From the NCBI GenBank assembly GCA_002269645.1, contig NIVC01002324.1:1-64000 (forward strand): 64,000 nt of DNA, in the 5' to 3' direction. Shown here piece after piece: positions 7,729 through 62,204 of this stretch. This stretch comes from Macrostomum lignano. Its lineage: Eukaryota. The position numbers and the translations under genes were made by a program. Under the pieces are notes generated by a model. It had not been told where the DNA came from and ran no database searches. It worked only from the letters and a program-made list of their open reading frames with translations. The stretch's first letter is position 1. Every line of letters begins with the position of its first letter.

Positions 7729-16556
<8,828 letters not shown>

Positions 16557-42429: not shown

Positions 42430-43220
42430 ACTATCTCACCCCATTCCGAATCTATCTCGACCTCTGTGGGCATTTCTGTGGGCACCTCAACCTATTCGGA
42501 ATCTATCTCACCTCATCTTGAATCTACCTCACCTCATTCCGAATGTATCTCATCCCATTTCGAATCTATCTCATTCCGTTCCAGATCTATCTCACCCCAT
42601 TCCCAATCTATCTCACCCCATTCCCAATCTATCTCACCCCATTCCCAATCTATCTCACCCCATTCCGAATCTATCTCACCCCATTTCGAATCTATCTCGA
42701 CCCATTTCGAATCTATCTCACCCCATTCTGAATCTATCTCACCCCATTCCAAATCTACATGTATCTCACCTCATTTCGAATCTATCTCGACCCATTTCGA
42801 ATCTATCTCGACCCATTTCGAATCTATCTCACCCCATTCTGAATCTATCTCACCCCATTCCAAATCTACATGTATCTCACCTCATTTCGAATCTATCTCG
42901 ACCCATTTCGAATCTATCTCACCCCATTCCGAATCTATCTCACCCCATTTCGAATCTATCTCGACTTATTCCGAATCTACCTCGACTTATTTCGAATCTA
43001 TCTCACCCCATTCTGAATCTATCTCACCCTATATTCAGTCTAGCTCACCCCATTCCGAATCTATCTCACCTCAGTCCGAATCTATCTCACCCCATTCCGA
43101 ATCTATCTCACCCCATTCCGAATCTATCTCACCCCATTTCGAATCTATCTCGACTTATTTCAAATCTATCTCACTCCATTCTGAATCTATCTCACCCTAT
43201 TTCGAATCTATCTCACTCCT
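42430..43220. repeat. 21-nt minisatellite (CGAATCTATCTCACCCCATTT)
   Basis: Direct inspection. Confidence 0.9.
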
Positions 43221-43720
43221 TTCCTTGCTATCTCCTCTCATTCGTTTCTGTATCTTATCTTTATGAAATCCTTCCATACTTGTCAATATTTATTTACAGA
43301 AGTTTTGAAACATACCGTACCTTGCTTCCAGCAATATATTATTATTGTCTCCTGCTGTCATAAAATTTCATCATCACGCAAACACGTGAGGCCCTACCTG
43401 ACGCAAAGAACACTGTGCACCCCAGAATTAAATACTTTTGAGCCTCAATACTACAATAGAAAGGAAAAGAAACTGCTCAATTTGCATTAACTACGAGTAC
43501 TAGACCAAAGTACGCAGTGTTAATCGCACCCCCATACGTATTAATTGTATCGTTGTTTGTCAGTGCCCTTGGCACTTTCGTCTCGCTGAGTTTAACACTC
43601 ACTTGCCCAGCGAGGAATAAAAAACCGGTTCAATCCGCTTCTTAATCACACTCGGGGGCATTTCGCATGCAGGCGCCTCCCGTGTCGTAGGTCTGCTCAG
43701 AAAGCGTGCTCAGAACAGGC

Positions 43721-43727
43721 TATAAAT
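43721..43727 (+). promoter_or_regulatory. TATA box of cationic peptide gene A
   Basis: GGC-TATAAAT about 100 nt upstream of ATG 43822; spacing matches the paralogs. Confidence 0.7.
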
Positions 43728-43821
43728 GGGCCCCAGCTTCACTTCCATTATCAGCTGACTGGGAGGTCTGAATCGCCGCTGTTCTCGTTGAATTTCCGCA
43801 GCATCAGCAGCATCAATCAGC

Positions 43822-44067
43822 ATGAAGTGGCAGCTGGCCACTCTTCTGCTCGCCTGCGTCGCCGTGGCCGTCATGGCGTCGCCGTCGGCCGAGGCCGAGG
43901 ACTCGGACCTGGCCGAGCTCGCCCAGCTGCAGGAGGCCATGGAGAGCGATGAGGTCGAGCACCTGCAGGCTAAAGGCCGCTACAGGCGCTTCAAGCGCAA
44001 GCTGAAGCGCGCCTACAAGCGCTATCTGAAGAGGCACGGATACCGGAGGCGCGTGATTTATGGCTGA
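43822..44067 (+). CDS. Secreted cationic peptide precursor A (81 aa: 19-aa signal, 32-aa acidic pro-piece, 30-aa Lys/Arg-rich peptide ending in Gly), antimicrobial-peptide-like
   Basis: MKWQLATLLLACVAVAVMA|SPSAEAEDSDLAELAQLQEAMESDEVEHLQAK|GRYRRFKRKLKRAYKRYLKRHGYRRRVIYG. Intronless, strongly C/G-ending codons, TATA upstream, homologous to the ORFs at 46503-46802 and 57274-57591. Confidence 0.9.
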   Translation: MKWQLATLLLACVAVAVMASPSAEAEDSDLAELAQLQEAMESDEVEHLQAKGRYRRFKRKLKRAYKRYLKRHGYRRRVIYG

Positions 44068-44821
44068 TTGTGGCCGCCACTGGACTGTCCGCAACGGAAC
44101 TGATTGTACTGAGTAATACTATATGCTCTCCACAGTATGTAGTACTTTGTAGAATTATCGATACAAGTATTGCATTTGCAAAATTATCAATACCGAAAAG
44201 AGCATGTTTCACCATCGCATGAGCTTGTCGTGTCAATGCAGCTGATTTATACAAAAAGAATGGAAATACACGAGCGTACACTTACTTTGCTATTCCTACT
44301 CTTATTTTAAGTACAGGTAACTCGTACGGGCTACTCTCAGCAGTTCTTGTTTTTATTTATTGAATTTGAAGATGGCTTGCACACCGAGAAGGCGAATTCC
44401 GTGTCCTAGATTGGATGATCTGGCATGCTAAATCAGAGATTGTGCAAAGACTCGACTGTTCTCTTTGATCAAGAGTTCGAATTGATTTTTAGTATGTTTG
44501 TATTCAATCGTTCAGAGTCCCTCTGAAATATGATAAACACTTTTACTATAGCTTTTGCAGCCCATTAGGGCCTACGTGCAATAAATTTAATTTAATGTAC
44601 CAGTAAGACACGGTTGGTAAAGTAATGGAGCTTTTGTCTAAAGCTGTGCAATGTTGCTTGAATAAAATTAATATCGTAGGCGTAGGAACGTTTCAAATAG
44701 TGGGGGGCCAGGTTCAGTGGCGGATTTAGGGGGGGGGGAGGGCGCACGCCCCCCATCGAGTTGTATTTTTTTGGGAAATGCACATTATCATGTACAGATT
44801 CTTTTCAGAATCGGTGTTGTC

Positions 44822-45362
44822 AGCACTCATTTTAGCGCCGCAGGCACTCATTTTAGCGCCACAAGCATTCATTTTAGCGCCGCAGGCACTCATTTTAGCG
44901 CCGCATGCAGTCATTTTAGCGCCACAAGCACTCATTAGCGCCGCATGCAGTCATTTTAGCGCCGCTAGCGCTGCAGGCAGTCATTTTAGCGCCGCAGGCA
45001 CTCATTTTAGCGCCGCATGCAGTCATTTTAGCGCCTCAGGCACTCATTAGCGCCGCATGCAGTCATTTTAGCGCCGCAGGCAGTCATTTTAGCGCTGCAG
45101 GCAGTCATTTTAGCGCCGCAGGCACTCATTAGCGCCGCATGCAGTCATTTTAGCGCTGCAGGCAGTCATTTTAGCGCCGCAGGCACTCATTTTAGCGCCG
45201 CATGCAGTCATTTTAGCGCCTCAGGCACTCATTAGCGCCGCATGCAGTCATTTTAGCGCCGCAGGCAGTCATTTTAGCGCTGCAGGCAGTCATTTTAGCG
45301 CCGCAGGCACTCATTTTAGCGCCGCATGCAGTCATTTTAGCGCCTCAGGCACTCATTAGCGC
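44822..45362. repeat. 19-21-nt minisatellite (GCACTCATTTTAGCGCCGCAG)
   Basis: Direct inspection; follows a CAGTGGCGGATTTAG hAT-like terminus at about 44716. Confidence 0.9.
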
Positions 45363-46423
45363 TGCAGGCGATATGTGAAAGAATTCTGCAGTCTCTCAAG
45401 AATAACAGCTTTTCTGTTAGGTTCAAGAACTGTTTATTTGAGTCTGAACCCCCACCCCATTGTGAGCCTGGCACTGGAAGGACCGACTCTTCATTGCCGC
45501 TGTCTCAAGGCTAGGTCGCATTGAGCATGCAGACTACCTGAGGGGCTGAGTATTCTCTTAACCAGCTCACCCAAATTTGGCTTGAGTTCTTGGGGCTCTG
45601 TTTTGTAGGTAAGCGAAAGCTCCCAGATTTCGGATTTATAGATTCGACGAGGTGGAGCTAGTGGATTTTTGGCTTTCTCTTTAAATATCGAATTCTTCAA
45701 CGATCATGCATAACTTTTTTTGATGAAAAAATCGTATTATGACTAGTGGGGTCAAATATTCGAAAAAACATGTTTTTAACGCTTTCACGCTTAACGCTCC
45801 GTTTGAATTTAATTGTTCAGTTCAATCATTTAGGTCTCTCCTTGGCCAATGTACAGTGTATAAGAATGTACATTCACAATAGCTAAGGCGTTTTATGACT
45901 CGCAATTTGTGGGGTTGATTGAGTTTTATCGTTTACCAGTCTGATAGACGATCGATGAAATAGAGGGGGTTATAAAGCTGCTGGCCTGAAATGCGATGTG
46001 TTTGCGGACGAAACAAGCCTTTTTTCACAATCCCCATCTTGCTCTGCTCTGCCCATTTGCCACTGCTCTGATTTTGTTTGTGTTATTTTAGAACACAGAG
46101 GGTGGCGCAGTTGCAGATGGGGGCAGTTGCTAATGGGTTCAATTACTTCAGACTTACTTGGCAAATTTGGAAAATAGTGCGCTAGTCACAATATACTAAA
46201 TAGTTTCCTAAAAGTGGGAGAGATGCTGAAGTCTGTTACCCTGCTGCTAAATATTTATTTTAACTAAAAGTTGAAAAAGTTAAAAAAACAATGCTTAATA
46301 ATTACGAGCTAGCTTGCAAACTGCGAACGATGAAATTCCAAGTGTATTTTCTGCCTGGCAGATTCTCAAAGTTCACGATGTTCAACAATCACTTGAGCTG
46401 ATATTATATAGTAAATTTTTTTG

Positions 46424-46429
46424 TTTATT
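46424..46429 (-). promoter_or_regulatory. Polyadenylation signal AATAAA of peptide gene B
   Basis: TTTATT on the + strand, about 74 nt past the stop codon. Confidence 0.6.
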
Positions 46430-46502
46430 AAGTGTACATTATCAGTAAAGAAAGATTAGTTATATTGTCCAAGGCGATAATTCAGAAGACGGTCCGGTTC
46501 GT

Positions 46503-46802
46503 TTAGCCATAGATGTGGTAGTGCCCGCGGAAGAAGCGCCGCCTGCGGAAGAAGCGCCGCCTGCTGAAGTAGCGCCTGCGGAAGTAGCGCCTGCGGAAGT
46601 AGCGACGCCTGCCGAACCGAATCCTAAACTTCTCTTCCGGATCCGCGTCCTCGTCGGATTCGGCCAGATCGGGCTCGGCCATGTCGGCCAGGGCGGAGGC
46701 CACCTTTTCGAAGTCTTCGTCGTCTTCTTTGTGCTCAGCCGGGCTGGCGTAGACCGCCAGCGCCACGCACAGGAGGAGACCGAGGGCGAACTGCCACTTC
46801 AT
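46503..46802 (-). CDS. Secreted cationic peptide precursor B (99 aa: signal, 39-aa acidic pro-piece, 41-aa Arg/Phe/Tyr-rich peptide ending in Gly)
   Basis: True start is ATG 46802, not the GTG at 46904, which lies upstream of the TATA box. MKWQFALGLLLCVALAVYA|SPAEHKEDDEDFEKVASALADMAEPDLAESDEDADPEEK|FRIRFGRRRYFRRRYFRRRYFSRRRFFRRRRFFRGHYHIYG. TATA and AATAAA both present. Confidence 0.92.
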   Translation of the reverse strand: MKWQFALGLLLCVALAVYASPAEHKEDDEDFEKVASALADMAEPDLAESDEDADPEEKFRIRFGRRRYFRRRYFRRRYFSRRRFFRRRRFFRGHYHIYG

Positions 46803-46889
46803 GGCTGCTGCTGAATTCAGAGAGATTCGCTTTGCAAAGTTGATCCCGTCTTGGGTCTTGGGGGCCGTTGTGAGCTCGAGGTGGTCGAC

Positions 46890-46895
46890 TTTATA
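46890..46895 (-). promoter_or_regulatory. TATA box of peptide gene B
   Basis: GGGTC-TATAAA on the - strand, 88 nt upstream of the ATG; same context as gene E. Confidence 0.75.
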
Positions 46896-47934
46896 GACCC
46901 GCAATCTGGGGCGGGGACACGTTTTTGCTTACCTGCAAAACAGAAGCCCCAAAAAACGTGCTCTCAAGACTCGATAGGGGGTTGAAATTTGAATGCTTTT
47001 GCCTCATGGTCCAAATTGCATTCAAAGAAAGAACGAAAGATGCATGCAGTAGCTGCCATTTTAATTTCAGCAACCACATATCTGATATTCATTCTCTCAC
47101 GGCCCCTTTCTCAACTCAATACTACCTAGCCTTGAGGCAGCAGTAATTAAAAGCGGCTCTTCAGTGTCAGACTCACAATAGGTGGCCTCAAGAACAGCAT
47201 AAGCAAGTCTTGGGCAGTTGAGCTTGAGAGTTGAAGCTGTTATTGTCTGGAAAACTACCGAACTCTACCTACGAGTCTTGTGAGTTCGCTCACACACTTG
47301 CAGACTTGCGTCGCATGGAAGCTTTTTCGGTCCCAGCATATTTTGGCCCATAAATTTTCTGTCAGGTTGACAGAGATCCCGGGACTTTAAAGCTGATTTG
47401 TGTCTATCTTCCAAGGGAATTTGTTCATCGTCAATTCAGCGAACCCAAAGGTTGCTTGATGGTATCGGCACGGGCTGTTCTGCCAGTCGTCCTGCACACC
47501 GCAGCGCTGTTGCTGGGGCTATTGATGTCAGTGATGCATTTGCGACAAAACACTGGCATTATTGGCATATTTAGCATAAGCAGTACCCTCAGGAGTTTGC
47601 AGCCTAAACTTATGCAGCTTTGAAAAGTCAGAGATTACTTCATGCTGCCACACCTTCACAGACTAAATATCTTGACTACAAAAGACTGTATCATCATCAG
47701 ATTCGTATTACATTCAGTGGTGTAGCAGTTTGAACAACCCACACTCGGCAGTTCAAAATTACCTTCAATGGTTCACCAAAAATTTAGCAATGGTTCACCA
47801 GCAGTTCAGCAATGGCTCACCAACAATTTGGCCACGGTTCACCAACAGTTTAGAAGCGGTTTATCAGAAGTTTAGCAATGGCTCACCAGCTATGGTTTAC
47901 CAGCACTGTTTCTCACAATCCCTGAGCAGATGGC

Positions 47935-48350
47935 CACAAATCTATGGCCATACCGGCTATGGCTACCTCACCAGACACTGCTTCCTCCGAGGCGACCTCG
48001 AAAGTGAACTTTGCCGTTTTTTGCGAGTGTGACAATGAAGATGCTCAGCACTTTGTCTGTCACTGCCCTTTCTTTACCAGAGACCGGCAACGCTACCTCG
48101 GGCCAAACCCGTCTATTGACGAGGTCTGCCAGCCCGACAGAATCTCACGGCTCATCCAGTTCCTCCGGGCGACGAGACGAGCCACTTTCTTCCCTACGGA
48201 AGATCAAAGCTGCAGGAAGGACCGGCGGACCACCCTGACCGGCCCCACGCCTCTGCCTGTCTGCGGGCCTTCGGGGGCTGGCGGAATGGGCGACCCTCGC
48301 CTCCCCGCTGTGTCTACGGACCACCATGCAGCTAAGTAAAGTAAGTCAAA
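47935..48350 (+). mobile_element. 5'-truncated non-LTR retrotransposon 3' end (I/Loa-like C-terminal CCHC knuckle)
   Basis: YGHTGYGYLTRHCFLRGDLESELCRF/CECDNEDAQHFVCHCPFFTRDRQRYLG..LIQFLRATRR, with a +1 frameshift in the T6 run at 48017-48022. Short TAAGTAAAGTAAGT tail at about 48333-48346. Confidence 0.75.
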
Positions 48351-48354
48351 GGGC

Positions 48355-48634
48355 CAGATGTACAAACGACAGCTCAGCCGCAGCTATTGCGCGGCGCATC
48401 TGAAGGCTGCGTACGGCTGTTCAGTCCAAGGACTGGGATTAATTACTAATACTGGCACCCATTTTACAGCTGGGTGAACTGAAGCAATGGAGAGTTAAGT
48501 GTCTTGCTCAAGGACACTAACAAGGAAGTTTTCCTAGTGGTTTTTGGACACTAATTGTTCCAGCTAGATCAGGAATCGAACCCCTGACCTTCAAGTCGTG
48601 ATTCCGACGCTCTAAGTACTAGGTTACAACTCCC
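48355..48634 (-). mobile_element. tRNA-derived SINE with a MIR-like CORE domain
   Basis: The - strand head has an A-box-like TAGTACTTAGAGCG and a B box GGTTCGATTCC (48572-48582). The + strand reads CCCATTTTACAGCTGGGTGAACTGAAGCAATGGAGAGTTAAGTGTCTTGCTCAAGGACAC (48458-48525), which closely resembles the MIR/CORE consensus as I recall it. The 3' boundary is approximate. Confidence 0.7.
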
Positions 48635-49234
48635 TTGCTATTGAGATACACGTCAAAAGATTCATACTCAACCCAACAGATGACATTTTAGCATTGTTAT
48701 GCATATAGTTACGTCTGTACTGGTAATATACGTTGTTTTTTATTTCAAAAAGCATTGTTAGTCGTTTCAGTCGGTCCTAAAGTAGTTGATTTATAATACA
48801 ACTTGTATTCGTCTTATAATCTCCTGAGTTATTATAGGGATACCCCTGCGTTAAATTAAGTGGGTTGGTTATGCACGAAAACGAAACTTTACTTGGCTGT
48901 AGTTTTGTTGAATTTATTTTAGTTGGTATGAGTAGGTGGTTTCTATTATCAGTTAATGAATTCAAACAATGCATAAACACTCTTTTATAGATCTGATCAA
49001 TATTCACCAGCCATCTGAGAGTCTGCATGGACGAAGCAAATAATTAAACCTGGCCGAAAAAGGAAGACCTTGAGAGATGCTGAGCACTGGGGGGTCTTTC
49101 TCGAAAGCAACTTACGATCGACCATAGACGTAAGTTGGGTAAGCTACACTTACGGGTTGCTCGAAGGGCTCGCAAGTTAGCTATGCGTAAGATTGATCGC
49201 AACTTTACGAGTTCGTAACTTTGTGCAAAAGACT

Positions 49235-49603
49235 CATGGATGAATGAATAGAATGGATTGCTATTCTGGCTCTGGCTATTTTCGTTTTTGACTCTTTTGC
49301 ATCCGGTTCCCCCCGTGCCTTTTCATTGGTTGATGATTGCCATAGACAATTTTCGGCCTTCGCCCCTTTCTTTCCTTTTTATTGTAGACGAATCGACTCT
49401 CGAATCGTGCTTGTAGGTCTTCCCCCTTTATTTCAAAACACGAGCGAAAGCGCTTGTGCATCGAAAGAAAGGGGCGAAGGCCGAAAATTGTCTATGGCAA
49501 TCATCAACCAATGAAAAGGCACGGGGGGGAACCGGATGCAAAAGAGTCAAAAACGAAAATAGCCAGAGCCAGAATAGCAATCCATTCTATTCATTCATCC
49601 ATG
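49235..49603. mobile_element. Foldback MITE with about 140-bp TIRs (CATGGATG...) and 8-bp TSD AAAAGACT; P-superfamily-like
   Basis: 49235-49374 is the reverse complement of 49463-49603, apart from one homopolymer length difference. TSD at 49227-49234 and 49604-49611. Confidence 0.9.
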
Positions 49604-49786
49604 AAAAGACTGTTTCTCGAAACGTTCGTATGTCTATGGTCTTTCGTAAGGTTGATCTTAACCCTACGACTGCTCGGTATCAGTCGTAAGACGCACTAAT
49701 CGCATAGTACGTGAAGCTTTAGTCAAGCCAAGTCAAGTTAAACTTTATCGAAGGTGGGTCTTTCTCGAAAGCAACTTACGATAGAC

Positions 49787-49827
49787 CAAGGAGTTCTATA
49801 ATTAGCAACTAATTATAGAACTCCTTG
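49787..49827. mobile_element. 41-bp perfect palindromic mini-element with 7-bp TSD GATAGAC
   Basis: CAAGGAGTTCTATAATTAG-CAA-CTAATTATAGAACTCCTTG; TSD at 49780-49786 and 49828-49834. Confidence 0.8.
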
Positions 49828-52800
49828 GATAGACTAAGTAAAGATATTTGCAGATTTATGACCATAGACATGCAACTTTTCGTTTCAGATACGACTTACG
49901 AACAGCGTAAGCCACGCAAAGTCTAAGTGAGTTTTGAGAAAGCGTCTTACGAGCAAACTTACTGTGACGTTGTCAGTTTAAGGTGGTCCCGAAAAGGGCC
50001 GTTGGACTGCTGGTTTTCCATAGTCATTCAACCCTTCAGTTTCACCGCTTCAACTAAACTTTTCCATTCGTTTATTGCGACGTTTACTTGTAGTAGTGCC
50101 CAACGATTTTGTGGCAATTTATAATTCATTGTATATTTTGCTATCCTCTCTCGCCACCGTATAAAATTGGCACGATCGATAATTTTAAGTTCTCTCGCCA
50201 GCCAATGAAATCACTCGTGTTCGCGCTACCCCCTCTGCGCTCTTTTATTAAACCCCCCCGCCTGGCGGCGGGCACTCCACGCGCCCCTTGCTCTCTCTCG
50301 CTCCTCTCTCTCCGCTTGCTCCTTGTTTCCTTCCCTGCGGCCTCTTAGCTGTCTTATCTGTTTGTCTGGCTGCCTCGAGCCTCCTTATTTCTCACCACGG
50401 CCCTTCTGTCTGGGCCAGCCTGCTCACACACTTACTTGACTGTTTCACGCCACGACCGACGCCAACTCACCACTACGTTTCACTGCATTCACTGTGATCA
50501 TAGCCACTGCTCACGTCACGTCGCCATTGTGTCATTCGCCTGCCACTTGACTTCATATCCAAATTATATTCAACCCATTGCTGCAGCCGCCAGTGCCCAG
50601 AAAGCTATAGTCTGTTTATTGCCAGTAACAACCAAACTTAATACTGATATTAACAATAAAGACAACTACGGCAGTTCCTGCCTTTATCGCCAAGTGCTCC
50701 GCTACAAAATCCGCTTTACAAGAATTGACTTCAACTTATTTTGGGACTAAAACGGCCCTTTTAAGGGTCACCGCATAGCTGGCCGCTACGCCAATAACGT
50801 GACACTTACGCTACACGCAAATTTCTTTCTTACGATCTAACTTACCATAGAACTTACGTGAGTTTCGAGAAACACCCCCTGTTTGATAATATTGAAAAAT
50901 ATTACTTTCGAACTTTCAAACTGGATGAACCGTTTTGCGTGAACACAGTTGTCTATGGTATGATCTAAATTTAGCTCCCATTAAGAAAGCATTTGTGGAC
51001 GAAAGGTTTTGCAGTTTGGACGAATTCAATCGCAAAAAAGTATATTAGGCGCTCTGTATTGTGAGTTTGAAGTGGTCGGGCCGAGGGCCAGGGTCACAAG
51101 CTGCTTGGCATTGAAACTGTAACTTGTCTGGAAAATTACTGGAATTTTTTATTCTTTTTAGACGCACGCAGGTCTCTCTTTCTATTGTTTTCACTGCATT
51201 TTTTTCTAAGCCTCATACCAAGAAAACGACCCTGCCTGTCCGTCTTAAACTCAAGTTTAGATTGCATTGGCATGCTCTTCTATACATAGTTTCATTGTGC
51301 TAAAGGAGGGATCGGAAAAAATTGTTACCTTAAGAGCCAAACAACCTAGCGCATGCCTTGCGAGCAAAGGAAGGGAGAGGAGAGGTAATTGAAGATAGAA
51401 GAAACGTAGGAGAAAGAAGAGGTGAGGGAATGCAGGAGAATAAAGGAGACGAGGGGAGAGGAGGGATGAAATAGGAAAGGAGAGAGGGAGAGGTAGAGGA
51501 GAGAGGGGGGAGAAGAGAGAAGAGAGGAGAAGAGAGAAGAAGAAGGAGGATAAGAGAGAGAGGAGACAAGGCAGAGAGCTGAGAAGAGAGACATGTGGCT
51601 CTCGGGCTGAAGTTTGCCGACGCCTGCGCTACGTTTCAGCCCTCTGCATCCTATCTAACGAGTGTCCCAAAAGAGGGTAATGCTGTCTGCGTTAACTGCG
51701 AGCGAGCAGTTTTGCGTATACCGCTGTAAATTGACAGTTTTACACTGAATATGTGCAATTGTTTTACTCCAACGATTTTGTGCCGAAAAAAATATCCAGT
51801 TTGTGCCAATCGTTGCCTTAGAGCAGTCATAGGTAACTTTTGAATGCTACAAAAAGTACTTTATTTTTAAGAAAACGAAAAGACGAACAGTGAAACTGAA
51901 AATGAACATAAAACAGCAATTCCGAGGCTACATGCACATGTCACGTACATGCATGATACTTGTTAAAAACTCCGCGACATGTCACTAAGCTATACGTGCC
52001 TCAGATGATGCTCATAGATTCCAATGCACTCTCGTCCTGTCGAAACCAACCAAAAGCTCCCACAGCGGCTGAGTCATAGATCTTATATTCCCTAGATAGG
52101 CCATTTTGTATTGTGGCAATAGGAAATGCGACCGTTGTCACTGGTGCGAAAAAGCTGACATGGGTTGCTTAAATTTTTAGTTCAGTAGCTTAGGGACACA
52201 GACACTATTTTTTGAGAAGTTGATAGAACTTCTTATTAAGTAAGAGTAGATATGTATAAGATATTCTATCGGTTTGAGGTCGGTATGAGATTAAATCCCG
52301 AGAGTTGCAACTGGCATATATTTTCTCCAAAACTGGATGAAAATGTCATTCTGCACCATTTTCCAAAGTTTGATACCGCCTCTCAGTATTGGATCGACGC
52401 ATTGAGATCAGAGGCTATAACCTCGGACGTCGTCAGGCAACACAAACTGCAGCTATGAAGCCTACAATTTGAAAGACGCCTACCCCCAATTTTGACGTCA
52501 ATTTGCGGTTGCGTTGACGTAGCAAAAATTACCTAACTGACTAACGATTTCGTTGGTAAATTTGTTTTTGCCACAGAAGCGTGGGGCACCGTTTTGCTTG
52601 CGGCAACGCCCCATTTAGTTGCTGCACGCTTTTTTTGTAAAAAAACAACGAAATCGTTTGGCAATGCAACTCAAGCCTCACTGCAGAATTTTAGTGATGA
52701 AGCGTTTCTATTTACTGTTCCAATGTGGCTCAGAGCGGTTCGTGGAAAAACACTGGTTTTTTCCTTTTCTGCCATGCAGGCACAAGAGATGGTTATAGAG

Positions 52801-53134
52801 CGGAGAGGGGTTGGGTGACTGGCTTGTTATATTGTTTGATATGAATATTTCGTGGCATTGGACTGATGGTCCGAACTTGAGATAGACGAACTTGCTTTCA
52901 AGTTATTAAATTTTACAGTTTTTTTACTTACTACGATCTTGTGTTTTACCCACTTTATAAGTCATAGTCATAATCAATCAAAGCGACCGATAAATATCCA
53001 GTATGTTTTATGAGCTACCAAAGTATGCTCGCATGCTAGAACTATGATTCTTTCAATCTAAAAATCATTATATACTAAATCTCTATATTTACTAAAGTCT
53101 TAATGTTTTTTTAATGCAAAATAGGCATGTAAAT

Positions 53135-53508
53135 CAATCTATGAAACAACCATGGAATCTATCGAATCAATCTATGGAACAATCATGGAATCTATCGAAT
53201 CAATCTATGGAACAATCATGGAATCTATCGAATCAATCTATAGAACAATCATGGAATCTATTGAATCAATCTATAGAACAATCATGGAATCTATCGAATC
53301 AATCTATGGAACAATCATGGAATCTATCGAATCAATCTATAGAACAATCATGGAATCTATTGAATCAATCTATGGAACAATCATGGAATCTATCGAATCA
53401 ATCTATGGAACAATCATGGAATCTATCGAATCAATCTATGGAACAATCATGGAATCTATCGAATCAATCTATGGAACAATCATGGAATCTATTGAATCAA
53501 TCTATGGA
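53135..53508. repeat. 33-nt minisatellite (AATCAATCTATGGAACAATCATGGAATCTATCG), about 11 copies
   Basis: Direct inspection. Confidence 0.95.
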
Positions 53509-53673
53509 AAAACGAGGCTTGCCCGCCCGTCACCAAAAGATTAGTCTCCTCCATTTCAGACTTACTTAGCTTGCTCTGCTTCAAACAATTTGGATGGTTA
53601 TTTGTTCCATTTTAAACCCACAAACGACAAAAGCAAGAACGACTGCCAGACACTTTCGGTAGCTAATATTCAA

Positions 53674-53882
53674 CTAGAACTGCGAGCGCCGGCGGAAGTA
53701 GCGATGCTTGCGGAACCGGAACCGAATCCGGAACTTCTCTTGCAGATCCGTGTTCTCGTCGGACTCGGCCAACTCGGACTCGGCCAGGTCGGGCTCGGCC
53801 GCGTCCGGCTCGGCCAGGTCGGCCAGGGTGTTGGACAACTTTTCGAGGTCTTCAGACAGCCCCAAAAGACGTGCCCTCGACC
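53674..53882 (-). pseudogene. Cationic peptide paralog C, pseudogene lacking promoter and signal peptide
   Basis: EDLEKLSNTLADLAEPDAAEPDLAESELAESDENTDLQEK|FRIRFRFRKHRYFRRRSQF* aligns to gene B. At 53853/53854 it joins directly to sequence homologous to the region upstream of the gene B TATA box (AGACAGCCCCAAAAGACGTG vs AGAAGCCCCAAAAAACGTG at 46942-46960). Confidence 0.85.
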
Positions 53883-53989
53883 TAGTTTCGGGAATTTCGG
53901 GTTAATGAAAAACCGGTTTCTCAACTTAATGGATTTACAATTAGAGTCAAGGTAAGGTACATCGTTTGAGGAAAGCCAAGAAAACGAAA

Positions 53990-54347
53990 GCAAACACGAA
54001 CATTCACATTTTTTCTTTAATAATACAAAATTACAATTTATTAATCTTCGCGCGACATGTTTCGCCGAATAATCGGCATCTTCAGGCAAAATATCGATGC
54101 AGAGAGATGGTAAATTTTTAAGTCTAGTAATCCAAAATGATGCAAGTATGGGTAACAGAGTTAGATGGCCCTAAATAAGAGGCAAGCGCATGGGGTCAGA
54201 ACACCCTTAGATGGACACTCGCCCCTCTACCACCAAGTTGGATGTTCATGGTGGGCTTTAGCTTGTTTAATGTACAATGCCTCAAGAGTAGACAACTTCA
54301 TACTCTGGCGGTTACGATCGATAATTTTAATCGATAATTTACGATCG
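53990..54347 (-). mobile_element. Penelope-like retroelement 3' fragment (GIY-YIG end plus pLTR)
   Basis: KIIDRNRQSMKLSTLEALYIKQAKA matches the C-terminal L..LEALYI...KP motif of Penelope GIY-YIG endonucleases. It is followed by the typical CTGAAGATG..CGAAACATGTC pLTR motif and an AT-rich tail. Boundaries are approximate. Confidence 0.7.
54046..54092 (-). ncRNA. Minimal type I hammerhead ribozyme (Penelope-type)
   Basis: The - strand reads UUUUGC-CUGAAGA-U-GCCGA-UUAU-UCGGC-GAAA-CAUGUC-GCGCGAA: core boxes, a 5-bp stem II, a palindromic ACAUGU stem III and a GUC cleavage triplet (54056-54054). Confidence 0.65.
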
Positions 54348-55498
54348 ACTTGTCTAAAAATTACTGGAGTCTTTTTATTGTTTTCGGCCGCACACAAGTC
54401 TGTCTTTTTATTGTTTTCGTTGCTTTTTATTTTTTTAAGCTTCATGCCAAAAAAGACCCTGCCGACTGCAACTCAAGTTTAGATTGCATCTGGCAGACAC
54501 TTCTACGCATATTCTAATTGCGCCTTGTGCCTTTCGTATTCGAATGTGCCATTGGCATGTAGAGCGTGATTACGTAGCAGAGGTGGAGAATTGAACTGTT
54601 GTTGAATTTCGGTTCAAATGTGACCAACTAACTGTCTTAGCTGTTAAGAGCTCCGAGACTTGCTCAATAAATGATTCATCGCAAATGCTTTAAGCAGCAG
54701 TTACTCTTTCCTTTTTTTCGAATCTCAAACTCAAAATGTCCTAATCAAAGTGAAAGCCTCTACACCTTTTTCAATTTACGAGTATTTTGGTAAGTGTGCA
54801 GTAAATATTGAAATACTCTCATTCAATTCACACGGTTAATGGTAGCCTTTGGTGTAATGTGCATCCACCTAACGCGTCTTCGTTCGATTACTCAAATATA
54901 GTATTTGATAACGCAGACGCTTTAAATAAAGCCCGAGCAACAGATGATCGCCCCACTTCATTAACTTGAATTTAGATTTTACAGAAAAGCGTTTTTCCTA
55001 TAAATATTTACTGCTTACTTAGGCAAAAAGATGACGCAGAGTCTTTTTAGAACTCATTTTAGAAACTAAAAACTAACGCTTACTCGTAACACACTACTCA
55101 AAGTAGGAGTAGAGCATGCCAGCAATTGACTTAAACTCTTTAAGAGTGTCTTTGAAAGAAAAGTTTTTATCAGTCTTCTAACAGAATAGCAAGATACTCG
55201 TACGTTCGTATTTAATAGTAGTGTTTAGGCTTGAATTCAGTAATTTGGTCACTTAAAATATAGTCAGATAAATTCGAGTTCATATAGCGCACTTGGTTTT
55301 AACATACATTTTTTAACATGGAGTTTGTATATCAGTAAGTCCGAAAACAAATGAAAAGTGAATCAGCTTTCATTAAATAACACCTTAGTGACACTCGATG
55401 ACCTGCTTTTAGTCCGAAAAAAATTAATCAAGTGGGTCATAGAAACTAATAAGGTAGGCTCTACTTTAAAAAATCCAACGATACTTGGATTCAAACTT

Positions 55499-55680
55499 CC
55501 AGGGCGAACTGCCACTTCATAGCTGCTGCTGCTGCGGTTGCTTTTGAAATCAAAGACGACAGCAAAATCGGTTCGCAGATTTTGCTCAACTTGGGGCCTG
55601 CTGGGCGCTCTCGGCCGGTCATGGTGACGGTCACGTTTTCGTTGTATTGCTGTCATCTGGACCGATGCACGTGTCCTGCA
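55499..55680 (-). pseudogene. Cationic peptide paralog D remnant (5' UTR, upstream motifs and first 7 codons only; TATA box lost)
   Basis: ATGAAGTGGCAGTTCGCCCTG (MKWQFAL, ATG 55520) then EV*. 55521-55675 aligns with 57592-57760 of gene E, except that the TATA-containing segment is replaced. Confidence 0.8.
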
Positions 55681-55984
55681 GCGTAATAATAAATGAATTC
55701 GGGGCTTTATTCATGCTATGTTAACATCTGAGGTGCTTGGAGCCAAGTAGAGGAATATGGTAATGGTTTGACTCGCTGTACTGCGGCACCGTGTCTTAAC
55801 TTCAGTTTAATAGAACGTGTCCTTTTTTCTACTTCGTAGTCAAATTGATCGGGGCATATTTTGTATGCAGGGCGCACGACCGTTTGCAGCTGCTGTCGGA
55901 GTGCAATTGATTTAAAATGCGCTTTCAAATGCTTCTATAATATAAAGAAAAAAAGTTAATTAAAACTTTGTTGAATTCATTGAG

Positions 55985-55988
55985 TAAC

Positions 55989-56076
<88 letters not shown>

Positions 56077-56089
56077 ATAGTAGTAGTAA

Positions 56090-56145
<56 letters not shown>

Positions 56146-56146
56146 A

Positions 56147-56190
<44 letters not shown>

Positions 56191-56191
56191 A

Positions 56192-56228
<37 letters not shown>

Positions 56229-56229
56229 C

Positions 56230-56296
<67 letters not shown>

Positions 56297-56306
56297 AGTA
56301 GTAGTA
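55985..56306. repeat. (AGT)n microsatellite
   Basis: Direct inspection. Confidence 0.95.
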
Positions 56307-57232
56307 GCGGAATTGTGGAAGGGTAAAAGGTTAATTAAGCGCTCTGTGTAGAAACATAAAATTCAGACTGATGAAAAAATCACGGTGCTTAGATTTATTT
56401 TAAGATTCCTTCTCATTTAATTTACTGCCGTTACTAGTGCGAGTATGGAATGAAAAAGTTGGCAATAAAGTTTGTTAATCTGAGACAGACTCGTGACTCA
56501 TAAATAGGTGCTAAGCAAATATTCGTAATAATAGTAGTAGAAGTTGTAGAAAGATGAGCTGCTTATTAGAATATTATACGACTCAAGCACTGCTTGGACC
56601 CACCCAACTCGCGTTGGAGGCCTCGGCTGCCAATTGTGCTCAATTTGCGCGTGAGAATGTAAAGCAGTCTCTCAAACTCATGCAATGAATCTGGGTAGCA
56701 GTTTTAACAATGAATCTCTGCACTTGGCAGACTGGTCCGGCTCCACTTAGACGTCGAACTCAGACGTCGAACTCAGACGGACGAGCGCAGACGAAAAAAA
56801 CTAGCAGAGATGTATTCCTCCGCTTACTCAGTTTAAATATTGCTCGTATGACAATAGCTTCATTTTCTTCGTACCTAGATCTAGGTATTTTCCATTACAG
56901 TCGCATTTGTTCGTCTTAAAGAATCGAGTATTTTTTTCACCACAATGTGGCGTGAAATTTAGGCATAGATGGCAACCATTTTGATGGTTCAAAGCGAGCT
57001 AAAGCTTTGCCTAGTCGGGTATTGTTTATTTCGCGCTTCTTTCTCATCTTTCGAAGATATAATTCATTCAATCAGGTCCTTTTCTAACAAGCAAGTAAGA
57101 TTTGAAACGAGGAAAACACTAAACTAAAGTATTCATCAAGCAAGTATCGAGAGAAGAGAAAAAATTTGTATGTTCTACTGAAGTTCTTATTACAGAGCGA
57201 ATTTCCGAACTACTGGGTGTATTAAAAGTGGT

Positions 57233-57238
57233 TTTATT
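57233..57238 (-). promoter_or_regulatory. Polyadenylation signal AATAAA of peptide gene E
   Basis: TTTATT on the + strand, about 36 nt past the stop codon. Confidence 0.6.
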
Positions 57239-57273
57239 TATGTCCAAAATGTTTTTCTCGCACGGGTTTTCGA

Positions 57274-57591
57274 TTAACCGTGGTAAGCGACGATGTGGAC
57301 GTGGTGGCGACGGTGATAGCGCCTGCGGTAATAGCGCCGGTAAAAGCGCCTGCGGTAATAGCGCCTGCGGCTGTGGTACACAAAATAGTGGCGACGCCTA
57401 CGACGACGGAAGAACAACTTCTCCTCGGGAGCCAGGTCGCTGTCCGATTCGGCCAACTCCGGCTCAGCCATGTCGGCCAGGGCATCGTTGGAAGCCTCGT
57501 CCAGGTTGTCGTCGTCGACTTGCTCAGCCGGGCTGGCGTAGACCGCCAGCGCCACGCACAGGAGGAGACCAAGGGCGAACTGCCACTTCAT
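57274..57591 (-). CDS. Secreted cationic peptide precursor E (105 aa: signal, 39-aa acidic pro-piece, 47-aa Arg/Tyr/His-rich peptide ending in Gly)
   Basis: ATG 57591. MKWQFALGLLLCVALAVYA|SPAEQVDDDNLDEASNDALADMAEPELAESDSDLAPEEK|LFFRRRRRRHYFVYHSRRRYYRRRFYRRYYRRRYHRRHHVHIVAYHG. Signal peptide identical to gene B; TATA and AATAAA present. Confidence 0.92.
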   Translation of the reverse strand: MKWQFALGLLLCVALAVYASPAEQVDDDNLDEASNDALADMAEPELAESDSDLAPEEKLFFRRRRRRHYFVYHSRRRYYRRRFYRRYYRRRYHRRHHVHIVAYHG

Positions 57592-57684
57592 TGCTGCTGC
57601 TGCTTTAGAAATCAAAGACAACAAACTCGGTTCGCAAAGATGCTACCCGACTTGGGAGCTCCTGGGCGCTTCACACAAGCCTTA

Positions 57685-57690
57685 TTTATA
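57685..57690 (-). promoter_or_regulatory. TATA box of peptide gene E
   Basis: GGGTC-TATAAATA on the - strand, 94 nt upstream of the ATG. Confidence 0.75.
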
Positions 57691-59984
57691 GACCCACTTT
57701 GATGGGGACGGTCACGTTTTCGCTTTATTATTGCCAGCTGGACCCCTTAACACGTGAAACGTGAAGATTTAGTTTTTTTGAGCACACGCGTCTGCAGCTG
57801 ACACGCCCTATGGGCGCAGACACACCCGTGCAGCGAGCTGACAGAAATTTCTGGAAAAGCAGTGGCAGCATCGAACACTACTCGAGCACGCAGCAATTGC
57901 TTGAAGCTTTTCTGCTCCATCTCAGTATCTCAATTCTCTTGATAAATAATAAGAAAGGCACACAATGCTGAGAATAATGGAGATTGCAATCAAGCCTTGC
58001 CCTCACTTCTATTTCTCTCTGTTTGGGTAAGACAGCAAAAACGTTTTGCTACTGCATCATTTTCCTGTCTCTCTCCACTCATTTCTGATTTTCTGTTCGC
58101 ACCCAACTCGGTGAGTTTGCACAAACTAGGACACCTGCTGCAGAAAACTTTGATGCTGCCAGTTTCTTACGGTTTAACAAACAGATTGGCCCAAGTAAAC
58201 ATTAAAATGTTATTGAAAAGTCAGTGAAGAACTCAACAAGGACTGCCAGACTAAGATGAGTGCTGCTCCAAGAATTTGTGTCTTTGTGACAAAATGCTTG
58301 ATTGAGAACCTTTCGGTGCATTGCACTGCACTTCATACATATGCATGTAACTGCATTAACTTACTTAGGCCTGAGACTATTAGAATAATTGGTCGTCCAT
58401 GCGTAAGACCTGAAAACTCTTCTGAGCAGTCGAAGCCAGTCGAAGCTATTCGAACGCACCCTTTATCTGCTGATACTGAAAACAACACTTACTGATAAAG
58501 GAGCAGCTAACGAGTCAGTTATTCCTTGAATCCATTTTTAAGCTCTTCTTTTTACATATACTGCAGTTCGCATTCATTTGACGATAAGTCAGTCAGACTT
58601 CGCAGTCGGAATTCGATCATTGTGTGTTCAAATCGATCATTGTATTGCACAATCTGCCATCGACAGAGGGTGATTAGCAGAGATGGGGCATTGCACTCTT
58701 GTTGAATTCCGGATGTGACCATAGGTGCTAACCAAGAGCTCCGATACCCATGCTCCTTAAATGATTCGTTGCAAACGCTTTGAGAATCAGTTTAGTCTTG
58801 TAACGAATCTGCTATTCGAATGATTGAATTGGTCGCTCATGTGCCATGGCTCTCCGCCATACCGTATACTTGCTAAGCGCAAGTCTTGTAGACTCTCAAG
58901 ATTAAAATTTCTTATCTGGTATAGCTTTTTTTACCTATGGTCGCGAATCTTTTAATCAATCTCGCAAACTCTCTATCTGCAATCGAAGAGTGACCACATG
59001 TTCGGTTTATAATCTTTGAGTTCACCAGATATTCTGTACCTCTACAATGTAGAAATCAAACAGTGAGACACCGTATTCGTTCGGTTGCTCAAGCATTGGA
59101 TAACACCGACGCTTTGAATTAAGCCTCCTGAGCAATTCAGATAATCAACCCACTCCATTAACTTGAGTTAGGAGTTTACAGCATCGCGATTTTTTGTCTC
59201 ACTGTTTACTGAGACAAAAATGTGTTGAAGATTATTTTAGGGTCCAGTTAGAAAATAAAAAGTGACGCTTAACACACTACTTAAAGTACGAATAAAAACA
59301 TGACAACAATTGGGTTAACTTCTTTGAGAATTTTTTTTGAAAATAAAAGTCTAAACCACAAAATACACGCGCTAACGCGCACTCGTGGTCTAGGCATTGT
59401 TACACTTGCAAGCCGTACACTCTCTCCATTGGCTACCTTCAAAACCATAGGCTCGATCTGCATGTAGCTTGTGCCATTGCCAGTGGGTTCGGTCCGTGGA
59501 TGAATAAAACCATGGATTTCTCGAGGCCCCCGTTCGCACCGATTGGCTACTGTAGATTCCATTGCTGTAAATTCGGTGCAAGTTGCAGTTCTGATTCATA
59601 CTTAAAAGACAAAACGACTGACTACAAGTAGTAAAAGAAGCTGAACTTTAAACCATTGAGATGGCGTGTCATTATTTGCATATCCAGTCAAGGATGAACA
59701 AAGGCTGACTATTTGTCTTGACATCGTTAAAACAGATCGAGTATTCACACCGACATGAATCAAGTACCAGTGTGAGCTCCATTTCAAGAACGAAGACTTT
59801 CCTACTTTGGCACAGGGAGGCCATGCAAGCTCCTGGTAAGAGTAGAAAAAGATTGAGACGTACGAATGTCTCGATCATCCAGTCCTGCAACGCTTTGCTG
59901 CTGAAGGCCCAGAATTGTACTGCATTCCTTGTCTTAATTGTACTTTTTCAATAATTTTCTAAACCTGCAGCTTCAATTACCTTA

Positions 59985-61712: not shown

Positions 61713-62204
61713 TCTGTCTGTCTGTCTGTCAGTCCTGCATGTTCCTGCATCTGTTTCTCCTGGAGAAGAAATCTTTCAATGCATTTATATTACTTTATTT
61801 TGAGCATCAGTAATATTGATGCTACGGCACGTTTTCTTTTTTTTATTCTTTGCGATATAACAGGGCTTTGCACATATTAGAATGATTGAGTTTGAAAGTT
61901 CATTTATTAGGAAATTAAGAAAACCTCTGGCTTTAATAGTATTAACTCTTGTCTCGAAATTACATTAGCCTCTCAGATACGCATTTGAAATACGCGCGAA
62001 AAATATGAAAACTAGTGTAATGGCTGAAACAATTTTATAGGACTTAGAAATCTAATTCCTTGCAAAAATTTCGCTTCGATCGGAACGACTGAGTCCATTT
62101 CACCAGCTCGTATTCGTCTGAAATGTGGAGGTGTTTGAGTACGGTGTTGTTATCTCGAAAGCCGCTTTAATTGCATTCACTGTAAAATTGGTGGCACTTC
62201 TTCA

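Follow-up and report, generated by a model that had tools for sequence, protein, structure and literature searches.

The DNA analysed here (the window) is a stretch of 64,000 nucleotides (nt) from the flatworm Macrostomum lignano, positions 1 to 64,000 of the forward strand of contig NIVC01002324.1. It carries a cluster of small genes for secreted precursors, in which a conserved signal peptide and an acidic pro-piece are followed by a variable cationic tail. As judged from sequence, these genes and their paralogues probably form a new family confined to one lineage; its polycationic secreted peptides would be processed, amidated and used as host-defence effectors. The probability that they encode processed secreted cationic peptides was put at about 0.85, and that of a host-defence function, suggested by analogy, at about 0.5. 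Host defence was favoured because precursor layout, processing signals, co-variation of charge, taxon restriction, birth-and-death evolution and sequence change focused on the mature part match established host-defence families.

Gene cluster and annotation status

Genes A, B and E, pseudogenes C and D, and gene F beyond the window form one tandem cluster. The features are listed below by coordinates and strand, with the evidence in brackets.

43700..43727, + strand: promoter of gene A, with a degenerate ACGTG-type box GAAAGCGTGCTC at 43700-43711 and TATAAAT at 43721-43727, about 100 nt before the ATG (direct reading and alignment of paralogue promoters).
43822..44067, + strand: gene A, 81 aa, one exon (list of open reading frames (ORFs), tblastn, GenBank annotation).
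46424..46429, - strand: polyadenylation signal AATAAA of gene B, about 75 nt past the stop codon (direct reading).
46503..46802, - strand: gene B, 99 aa counted from the Met of MKWQ, one exon (ORF list, tblastn, GenBank annotation).
46518..46616, - strand: coding tandem repeat of gene B, period 15/18 nt, encoding RRRYF / RRRFF (Tandem Repeats Finder).
46889..46925, - strand: promoter of gene B, with a AAAACGTGTCC box at 46925-46915 and TATAAAG at 46895-46889 (sequence reading, box search, alignment).
About 53674..53880, - strand: pseudogene C, pro-piece and start of the cationic part, no signal (tblastn of B against C, 9e-14).
About 55491..55640, - strand: pseudogene D, with a AAAACGTGACC box at 55639-55629, 5' untranslated region (5'UTR), ATG plus 7 family codons, and a stop (tblastn, promoter comparison).
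57233..57238, - strand: polyadenylation signal AATAAA of gene E, about 35 nt past the stop codon (direct reading).
57274..57591, - strand: gene E, 105 aa, one exon (ORF list, tblastn, GenBank annotation).
57307..57370, - strand: coding tandem repeat of gene E, periods 15 and 27 nt (Tandem Repeats Finder).
57684..57720, - strand: promoter of gene E, with a AAAACGTGACC box at 57720-57710 and TATAAAT at 57690-57684 (sequence reading, box search, alignment).
61785..61835, - strand: possible relic promoter, uncertain, with a AAAACGTGCCG box and, about 40 nt on, ATATAAAT (box search).
66880-67326 of the same contig, - strand, 2.9 kb past the window edge: gene F, annotated, 148 aa.

Three intact copies (A, B, E) and two broken ones (C, D) had been proposed in an initial annotation of the sequence, and all five were recovered where it had placed them. 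By tblastn within the window, B matched E at 8e-35 and A matched B at 9e-11, a likeness far past chance. Exact-protein look-up identified A, B and E as genes on NIVC01002324.1 in the GenBank record of the Mlig_3_7 assembly (GCA_002269645.1). For each, the annotated gene range equals three times the product length plus 3. The coding sequences (CDSs) are thus single-exon, which agrees with the earlier description of the intact copies as intronless.

The GenBank annotation of Mlig_3_7 was built solely from a genome-guided transcriptome obtained by RNA sequencing (RNA-seq) (PMC5730564). Since A, B and E are called in this RNA-seq-derived annotation, we infer from the way it was produced that the intact genes are transcribed; silence of the intact copies had been named beforehand as a finding that would refute the proposal. 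Exact-protein look-ups of the three products returned the genome contig only and no RNA-seq assembly match. Contig NIVC01000866.1 (locus L001) matches the window from 47.5 to 64 kb at 96-99% identity. By this match, it represents a homeologous or allelic copy; M. lignano is a hidden polyploid, in which such copies are expected.

Precursor architecture of the window genes

In gene A, the signal MKWQLATLLLACVAVAVMA is followed by an acidic pro-piece (net charge -9), Lys51 and the tail GRYRRFKRKLKRAYKRYLKRHGYRRRVIYG (net +15), a Lys/Arg/Tyr peptide with an amphipathic-helix pattern and a C-terminal Gly. Its helical hydrophobic moment was 0.80, a value equalled by 1.8% of shuffles. AlphaFold2 modelling of the gene A precursor from a 6-sequence alignment gave, at moderate confidence, a helix at residues 54-71 (predicted local distance difference test (pLDDT) about 80 in this block and 68.5 overall). 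A single-sequence model of the gene E precursor was uninformative (pLDDT 62).

Gene B encodes a signal, a pro-piece of net charge -14, Lys58 and the tail FRIRFG-RRR-(YF RRR)n...GHYHIYG, which holds 19 Arg, 14 Phe/Tyr, a C-terminal Gly and an internal FRIRF-G-RRR site. Gene E has a signal identical to that of B, a pro-piece of net -14, Lys58 and the tail LFFRRRRRRHYFVYHSRRRYYRRRFYRRYYRRRYHRRHHVHIVAYHG with 19 Arg, 13 Tyr/Phe, 7 His and a C-terminal Gly. Gene F starts with a related signal (MKLQLL...) and a 48-residue acidic pro-piece. Its 78-residue tail consists nearly entirely of RRRYY units, carries a net charge of +43 and has Gly at the end; the hydrophobic moment of 0.92 was equalled by 0.2% of shuffles. 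Recounting reproduced the earlier numbers for A, B and E, namely 10, 17 and 15 acidic residues in the pro-pieces and 15, 19 and 19 Lys/Arg in the tails, which are free of Cys, Asp and Glu.

Family members and taxonomic range

Word-indexed protein searches covered 5.8 billion proteins, and a profile hidden Markov model (HMM) of signal and pro-piece was run exhaustively over 1.84 billion cluster representatives. Relatives were found in M. lignano only, plus one Logan genomic contig. At least 12 distinct family genes lie on many M. lignano contigs, every one of them named 'hypothetical protein'.

Mlig025063.g1 is the homeologue of E. Mlig027113.g1 (P0002) is a single copy amid PARP-domain genes on NIVC01001462.1, NIVC01000621.1 and NIVC01000739.1 (near-identical loci L002-L004), so the family has scattered members besides its clusters. 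These three loci illustrate the three-fold contig redundancy of the assembly. Mlig026085.g2 (P0014) has two copies, identical in sequence and inverted to each other, at a distance of 4.1 kb: L008:9967-10206 (-) and L008:14312-14554 (+). The 127-aa GenBank model of this gene spans both copies and looks mis-joined; an 80-aa form is typical of the family. Other members are Mlig015779.g1, Mlig015087.g2, Mlig020420.g1, Mlig001660.g1 and Mlig010792.g3, the last being one of a tandem pair, and Mlig017210.g1 is a doubtful member.

The Logan contig (SRR31628392; L009, 929 nt) encodes a member with a Pro/Arg repeat peptide, together with the family promoter box and a TATA box. Against the M. lignano paralogues compared, the coding DNA reaches only 70-75% identity. 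The member may belong to another Macrostomum species or be an M. lignano gene that was left unannotated.

A Pfam-A scan of A, B and E gave sub-threshold chance matches for A and B and none for E. A sequence search of the PDB with three mature peptides returned no relative, and a full-text literature search for nine family gene ids and six peptide strings returned no paper. In the searched literature, no antimicrobial or other effector peptide family was found for Macrostomum. Family ids were also absent from the supplements of Weber 2018, Brand 2020 and Wudarski 2017, which use other transcript names or are incomplete files, so that this is not evidence of absence. That no named family could be recognised, as initially reported, is borne out by the lack of a Pfam family, the 'hypothetical protein' names and the lack of a paper. 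The extent of the family, its conserved cassette, its promoter and its mode of evolution appear to be undescribed in searchable sources. The genes themselves were already deposited as hypothetical proteins and the design is known; by sequence comparison, this instance of it is new and non-homologous. The (RRRY[F/Y])n members are unusual.

Conserved cassette and variable mature peptides

Conservation was scored on a 13-sequence family alignment. The signal consensus is MKWQ[LF]ALGLLLC..LA, followed by A|(S)P. Invariant positions are M1, A16 and one pro-piece Leu; Q4, L10, P21 and K58 are conserved in at least 90% of members. In 12 of the 13 members, the signal consists of MK, a hydrophobic core and AVYA|SP, AVMA|SP or LAVA|VP, with small residues at -3/-1 (judged by eye). 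The pro-piece is 32-48 residues long, mostly 35-39. Its invariant Leu sits inside an (A)LExLxxLxE-like motif, which indicates that the pro-piece is more than merely acidic.

Net charge ranges from -3 to -15 in the pro-piece and from +2 to +43 in the mature part (12 members), so that all of these precursors are bipartite in charge. The pro-piece charge drops as the mature charge rises (Spearman -0.70, p 0.012, n=12, uncorrected for relatedness of the paralogues). This co-variation supports the initial proposal that the anionic pro-piece neutralises the cationic peptide. At family level, it was likewise upheld that these are secreted prepropeptides in which signal and acidic pro-piece are conserved while the cationic C-terminal peptide varies.

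Processing signals are a second conserved element. A Gly at the C-terminus, whether or not basic residues follow it, serves as a donor for alpha-amidation, and K or KK is a convertase-type cleavage site. Lys stands just before the cationic part in at least 90% of members, as a single K in the subfamily of the window and as KK in the other. Mature parts end in Gly in 9 of 12 members, compared with 2.8% Gly at non-terminal tail positions (binomial P 2e-12). With P0064 (ending GKR) and P0065 (ending GK), a Gly, GK or GKR end is found in 11 of 13 members. The mature peptides are therefore, as read from these termini, probably amidated.

The mature parts fall into several types. B, E and F have Arg/Phe/Tyr/His repeats, and P0002 has a Trp/Arg/aromatic peptide. 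P0014 and P0061 combine an Arg block with a KAIRVAGKVAKAVL-type helix; the mature peptide of P0014 is WRRRRRFRWRKAIRVAGKVAKAVL, and its hydrophobic moment was not significant over an 18-residue window. FVRVRARIRL-G and IFRVHVRF-G (P0059) are alternating Arg/Val nona- to decapeptides, and P0063 has (PRVRL)n Pro/Arg repeats. By composition and pattern, the mature peptides of the paralogues resemble several classical archetypes of antimicrobial peptides (AMPs).

Signal, acidic spacer, K/KK, short peptide and Gly are also the standard layout of neuropeptide precursors. Turbellarian FMRFamide-like peptides end in -YIRFamide. The family shares with this group (YIRFamide) the basic cleavage sites and the Gly amide donor, and K-FRIRF-G-RRR of B and KKK-IFRVHVRF-G of P0059 would give peptides ending in RFamide. 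The precursors could accordingly be read as sources of amidated, partly RFamide-like neuropeptides or hormones that neurons or endocrine cells would release and that would signal through receptors. Antimicrobial activity of neuron-derived Hydra peptides (PMC10945409) was counted in favour of this reading, which was nevertheless judged improbable. Conservation is the reverse of that expected, with signal and pro-piece kept while the predicted active peptide is hypervariable, and C-termini are diverse (-IY, -YH, -RL, -RF, -HI, -YY). RF-Gly occurs in only 2 of about 13 members, B (FRIRFG) and P0059 (VRFG); the others end in -IYG, -YHG, -RLG, -HIG, -YYG, -AVL or -SKK and are not FMRFamide-like. 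Tails of 41-78 residues with a net charge of +19 to +43 are not neuropeptide-like either, and the HMM search gave no homologue in any other flatworm.

A role in condensing granules or forming materials was considered for the repeat members. B, E and F would then coacervate polyanions by cation-pi interactions and could help to pack or set secretions, for instance rhabdites, mucus, eggshell or the duo-gland adhesive. In another version of this reading, the active product would be the anionic pro-piece. In line with such a role, the three tails repeat Arg/aromatic units regularly without being amphipathic, reaching 78 residues and net +43, and every precursor is built as a di-block, one segment being anionic and the other cationic. 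In M. lignano, adhesion centres on charge interactions, and a small anionic molecule yet to be identified serves as the releasing factor (PMC6410801, PMC8621496). This alternative is rather unlikely for the family: the peptides of most members have 9-33 residues and little or no Tyr, which suits a structural role poorly, and the conserved amidation and cleavage signals suggest small bioactive peptides. Moreover, releasing vesicles were reported to be low in protein density, and detachment is blocked, not promoted, when cationic molecules are added (PMC6410801). A narrower and still less probable form of the idea, drawn from the sequence pattern, takes B, E and F as secreted 'sticker' polycations that are not membrane-active. 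Their di-block precursors would self-condense in granules. Once released, both halves would work on extracellular materials of the worm itself: the cationic half would coacervate polyanionic mucus, rhabdite or adhesive material, and the pro-piece would be a small anionic competitor like the postulated duo-gland releasing factor.

Shared promoter module

Each gene is a compact single-exon, TATA-driven unit with a common promoter module. A TATA box (TATAAAT or TATAAAG) lies about 90-100 nt before the ATG of A, B and E. A AAAACGTGNCC box is found 10-22 nt before the TATA box in B, E, F, both P0014 copies (P14a/b), P0062 and P0063. A degenerate form occurs in A and P0002, and pseudogene D still has the box. 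The exact box has three occurrences in the window, all correctly oriented upstream of B, D or E. With one mismatch allowed, 12 matches were counted against 2.7 expected. On the opposite strand, the CACGT core of the box is E-box-like by sequence. The start context of the intact genes is GCAGCAGC(A/C)ATGAAGTGGCAG. Within about 330 nt downstream of A no AATAAA was found.

Downstream of the box and TATA-like element at 61785-61835 (-), no family (MKWQ-type) ORF was found, and the sequence runs into a (CAGA)n microsatellite. By its sequence, the element is possibly a relic of a lost copy. The promoter of about 150 bp, with its ACGTG-type box and TATA box, could be used to drive reporters and reveal the producing cell type.

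The orientation of these elements bears on whether the genes are real. The window is rich in minisatellites that look coding, the tails are Arg-rich and of low complexity, and long antisense ORFs overlap B and E, all of which would be in keeping with chance ORFs in repeat-rich DNA or with non-secreted, protamine-like nuclear proteins. Such an artefact was rated extremely improbable. Promoter, TATA box, Kozak context, signal peptide and polyadenylation signal are all correctly oriented, the annotation is based on RNA-seq, and paralogues are conserved on many contigs with in-frame indels. Chance ORFs in minisatellites were rejected on account of promoter, polyadenylation signal, annotation and paralogue conservation. 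A protamine or other sperm nuclear basic protein was rejected because all members start with a hydrophobic signal peptide, followed by an acidic pro-piece.

Mode of evolution

Protein identity of the B and E signals, as first noted, was verified; their DNA differs at 1 of 60 nt. Over the pro-piece, B and E differ at 37 of 114 nt (Fisher 4e-7), and synonymous divergence (dS) is 0.07 in the signal versus 0.67 in the pro-piece. The same pattern holds throughout the B/E/P0002 subfamily, with 1-3 of 60 nt differing in the signal versus 33-37 of 114 in the pro-piece (Fisher 4e-7 to 1e-4). In this subfamily dS is 0.07-0.15 for the signal and 0.44-0.76 for the pro-piece, and the ratio of nonsynonymous to synonymous divergence (dN/dS) in the pro-piece is 0.4-0.9; all these values rest on few sites. 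The 5' flanks of B and E are just 64% identical, which makes the signal-coding DNA an island of conservation. Between subfamilies, the signal changes at synonymous sites and the amino acids are kept, which argues for purifying selection on the signal peptide.

The cationic parts of B, E and F are built on coding repeats with a period of 15 nt. B and E share the unit CGC AGG CGC TAY TWC, encoding RRRY[F/Y], and their tails differ chiefly in repeat number and by indels. The claim that the mature parts are hypervariable needs a restriction: it holds across the whole family, and the tails of B and E, identical at 78 of 126 nt, are related to each other. A young tandem pair at L010 differs at 3 of 359 nt in the 200-nt promoter and 159-nt prepro region and at 5 of 33 nt in the mature part (Fisher 1.5e-4); these five differences cause three amino-acid changes.

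Repeat length also seems to vary between alleles. P0001, the E homeologue with an annotated product of 96 aa, is without YYRRRFYRR, and its own contig encodes all 105 aa (L001:10001-10318). The nine missing residues correspond to one 27-nt period of the E repeat, which overlaps the YYRRRFYRR codons. Most likely, the shorter P0001 derives from a transcript of a shorter allele and reflects a repeat-length polymorphism.

The broken copies C and D decayed by different routes. In pseudogene C, an element of the far-upstream promoter flank, GCACGTCTTTTGGGGCT, is joined straight to the middle of the pro-piece and followed by EKFRIRFRFRKHRYFRRRSQF*. This element is of the GCACGT(C/T)TTTTGGGGCT type, which normally lies far upstream of the promoter (B and P0002 flanks compared). 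Promoter box, TATA box, 5'UTR and signal peptide are lost through an internal deletion. Pseudogene C was also found in the homeologous contig NIVC01000866.1. Pseudogene D reads only MKWQFALEV*; its TATA box is deleted and the remaining CDS is replaced by unrelated DNA.

Birth-and-death evolution, as initially suggested, is supported with respect to tandem duplication and pseudogenisation. The family diversifies via tandem duplication, pseudogenisation, slippage of the 15-nt repeat and substitutions focused on the mature codons, with signal and promoter being kept. It offers a compact case of focal diversification, in which the signal DNA is near-frozen and the mature codons shift by slippage and clustered substitutions.

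Taxon restriction, tandem duplication and fast-changing mature parts are hallmarks of seminal fluid proteins as well. The peptides might be reproductive secretions, made in prostate, cement or antrum glands, passed on or laid down during mating or egg laying, and driven to rapid change by sexual selection or conflict. In M. lignano, 76 or more transcripts are limited to the prostate; many of them encode secreted proteins, and 31 had no BLAST hit (PMC5977470). Family ids are absent from the supplements of the prostate screen and of reproduction genes, a weak counterargument given other transcript names and possibly incomplete files. A K/KK plus Gly amidation cassette combined with polycations is not described for known Macrostomum seminal fluid candidates. 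On balance, a reproductive role was regarded as unlikely.

Comparison with known systems

The closest documented parallel to the family are the Hydra arminins, which on sequence grounds are analogous and not homologous. Both have a signal, an anionic N-terminal part and a strongly cationic C-terminal peptide, which in arminins is amidated in the active form (PMC10945409, PMC6217004). Restriction to a single genus and many tandem-clustered paralogues, including some silent or broken copies, are shared as well (PMC10945409, PMC6217004); bipartite charge, taxon restriction and tandem clusters are general features of Hydra AMP families (PMC10945409). The peptide of P0014, WRRRRRFRWRKAIRVAGKVAKAVL, is close in composition and pattern to arminin 1a-C, which is KPWRFRRAIRRVRWRKVAPYIPFVVKTVGKK-NH2 (PMC6217004). 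The arminins differ in belonging to another phylum, in having no counterpart of the Arg/aromatic repeat members of the window, and in that their activity was shown experimentally; the Macrostomum family is known here from sequence only. No cnidarian protein was among the matches of the word-indexed search or of the prepro HMM (1.84 billion representatives); no direct pairwise alignment with arminins was made.

Precursors of the frog preprodermaseptin type and of cone-snail toxins have a conserved signal and acidic pro-region and a hypervariable mature peptide. They resemble the Macrostomum family in evolutionary mode, in the basic cleavage site before the mature peptide and in frequent C-terminal amidation. 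They are non-homologous, and in contrast to them the Macrostomum family has single-exon genes with a K or KK cleavage site in place of KR.

Matches outside flatworms were limited to bacterial Arg/Tyr-tailed small proteins (P0003-P0013, P0015-P0058) and were weak and driven by composition. Like the Macrostomum precursors, these proteins have about 100 residues, an export signal, an acidic/Pro-rich spacer and a C-terminal (RRRYY)-like tail. Unlike them, they carry a signal of the twin-arginine translocation (Tat) type instead of MKWQ and lack the conserved pro-piece motif and the terminal Gly. Homology was rejected in view of the compositional nature of the match, the different signal type and the absence of a common pro-piece motif; as far as sequence can tell, the bacterial proteins are very probably convergent with B, E and F. 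They are about 100 aa long and consist of a Tat signal MDRRxFLxGLxG..., an Ala/Pro/acidic spacer and an Arg/Tyr(/Trp) repeat tail, e.g. YWRRRRRRLYRRYYRRPRRRFYRRHYRRHYRRRFY. In Mesorhizobium and Methylopila, a few bear the annotation 'protamine-2 (modular protein)'; the proteins appear uncharacterised. No Pfam or NCBIfam family was found for bacterial proteins with Tat signal and Arg/Tyr tail.

Proposed function

In the favoured host-defence reading, the precursor would enter the endoplasmic reticulum, where the acidic pro-piece would mask the cationic tail and may aid sorting to secretory granules. A convertase-type protease would cleave after K/KK, a carboxypeptidase would then remove basic residues, and peptidylglycine amidating monooxygenase would turn the terminal Gly into an amide. 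The secreted amidated polycation would act on anionic targets, most likely microbial envelopes. Gene A would represent an amphipathic-helix type. B, E and F would be non-amphipathic Arg/aromatic repeats, acting by Arg/aromatic binding of polyanions or membranes and not as a classical helix.

Several points weigh against this reading. An antimicrobial function is inferred from layout and composition only, and the structure models of A and E are of low to moderate confidence. For helical and strand hydrophobic moments, B and E score lower than 85-99% of shuffles (lower than 97-99% for the helical moment), which is a misfit to the commonest AMP mechanism. The RR, RRR and RRRR tracts in the tails of B and E are potential convertase sites, so that the true mature products could be far shorter than the whole tail; B could, by its sequence, yield FRIRF-amide and small fragments. 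The charge correlation ignores kinship among the paralogues. Secreted peptides that evolve fast and are confined to one lineage are just as typical of seminal fluid, for which M. lignano is well studied (PMC5977470).

If the peptides are host-defence effectors, they would provide a handle on innate immunity and microbiome control in flatworms. They would also be a second independent case, after Hydra, of a genus-restricted, tandemly expanding, charge-bipartite peptide arsenal. M. lignano is the one flatworm with routine transgenesis and RNA interference, and the family is therefore directly testable. The (RRRY[F/Y])n members are natural secreted, probably amidated Arg/Tyr polymers of extreme charge and are relevant to work on cell-penetrating and antimicrobial peptides and on phase separation.

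Other features of the window

Two long non-repeat ORFs were noted. The first, at 7729-9846 (-), encodes 705 aa, is Gln/Pro-rich and lies in a stretch of 65% G+C; the second, at 22116-23591 (+), encodes 491 aa, including a poly-Pro tract and, towards the C-terminus, an acidic part. Neither has a Pfam match. They probably represent exons of ordinary M. lignano genes that have nothing to do with the peptide cluster.

Positions 26744-28980 hold a minisatellite of 21-nt units, about 2.2 kb long. It is open in several frames on both strands and gives rise to ORFs of 730 aa, e.g. (EQEAPNS)n. Further arrays lie at 43000-43224 (21 nt), 44823-45369 (21/42 nt x26), 53132-53509 (33 nt x11.5) and 55989-56307 ((AGT)107), and also at 10.5-11.2 kb, 14-15.3 kb, 29-30 kb and 34-39 kb.

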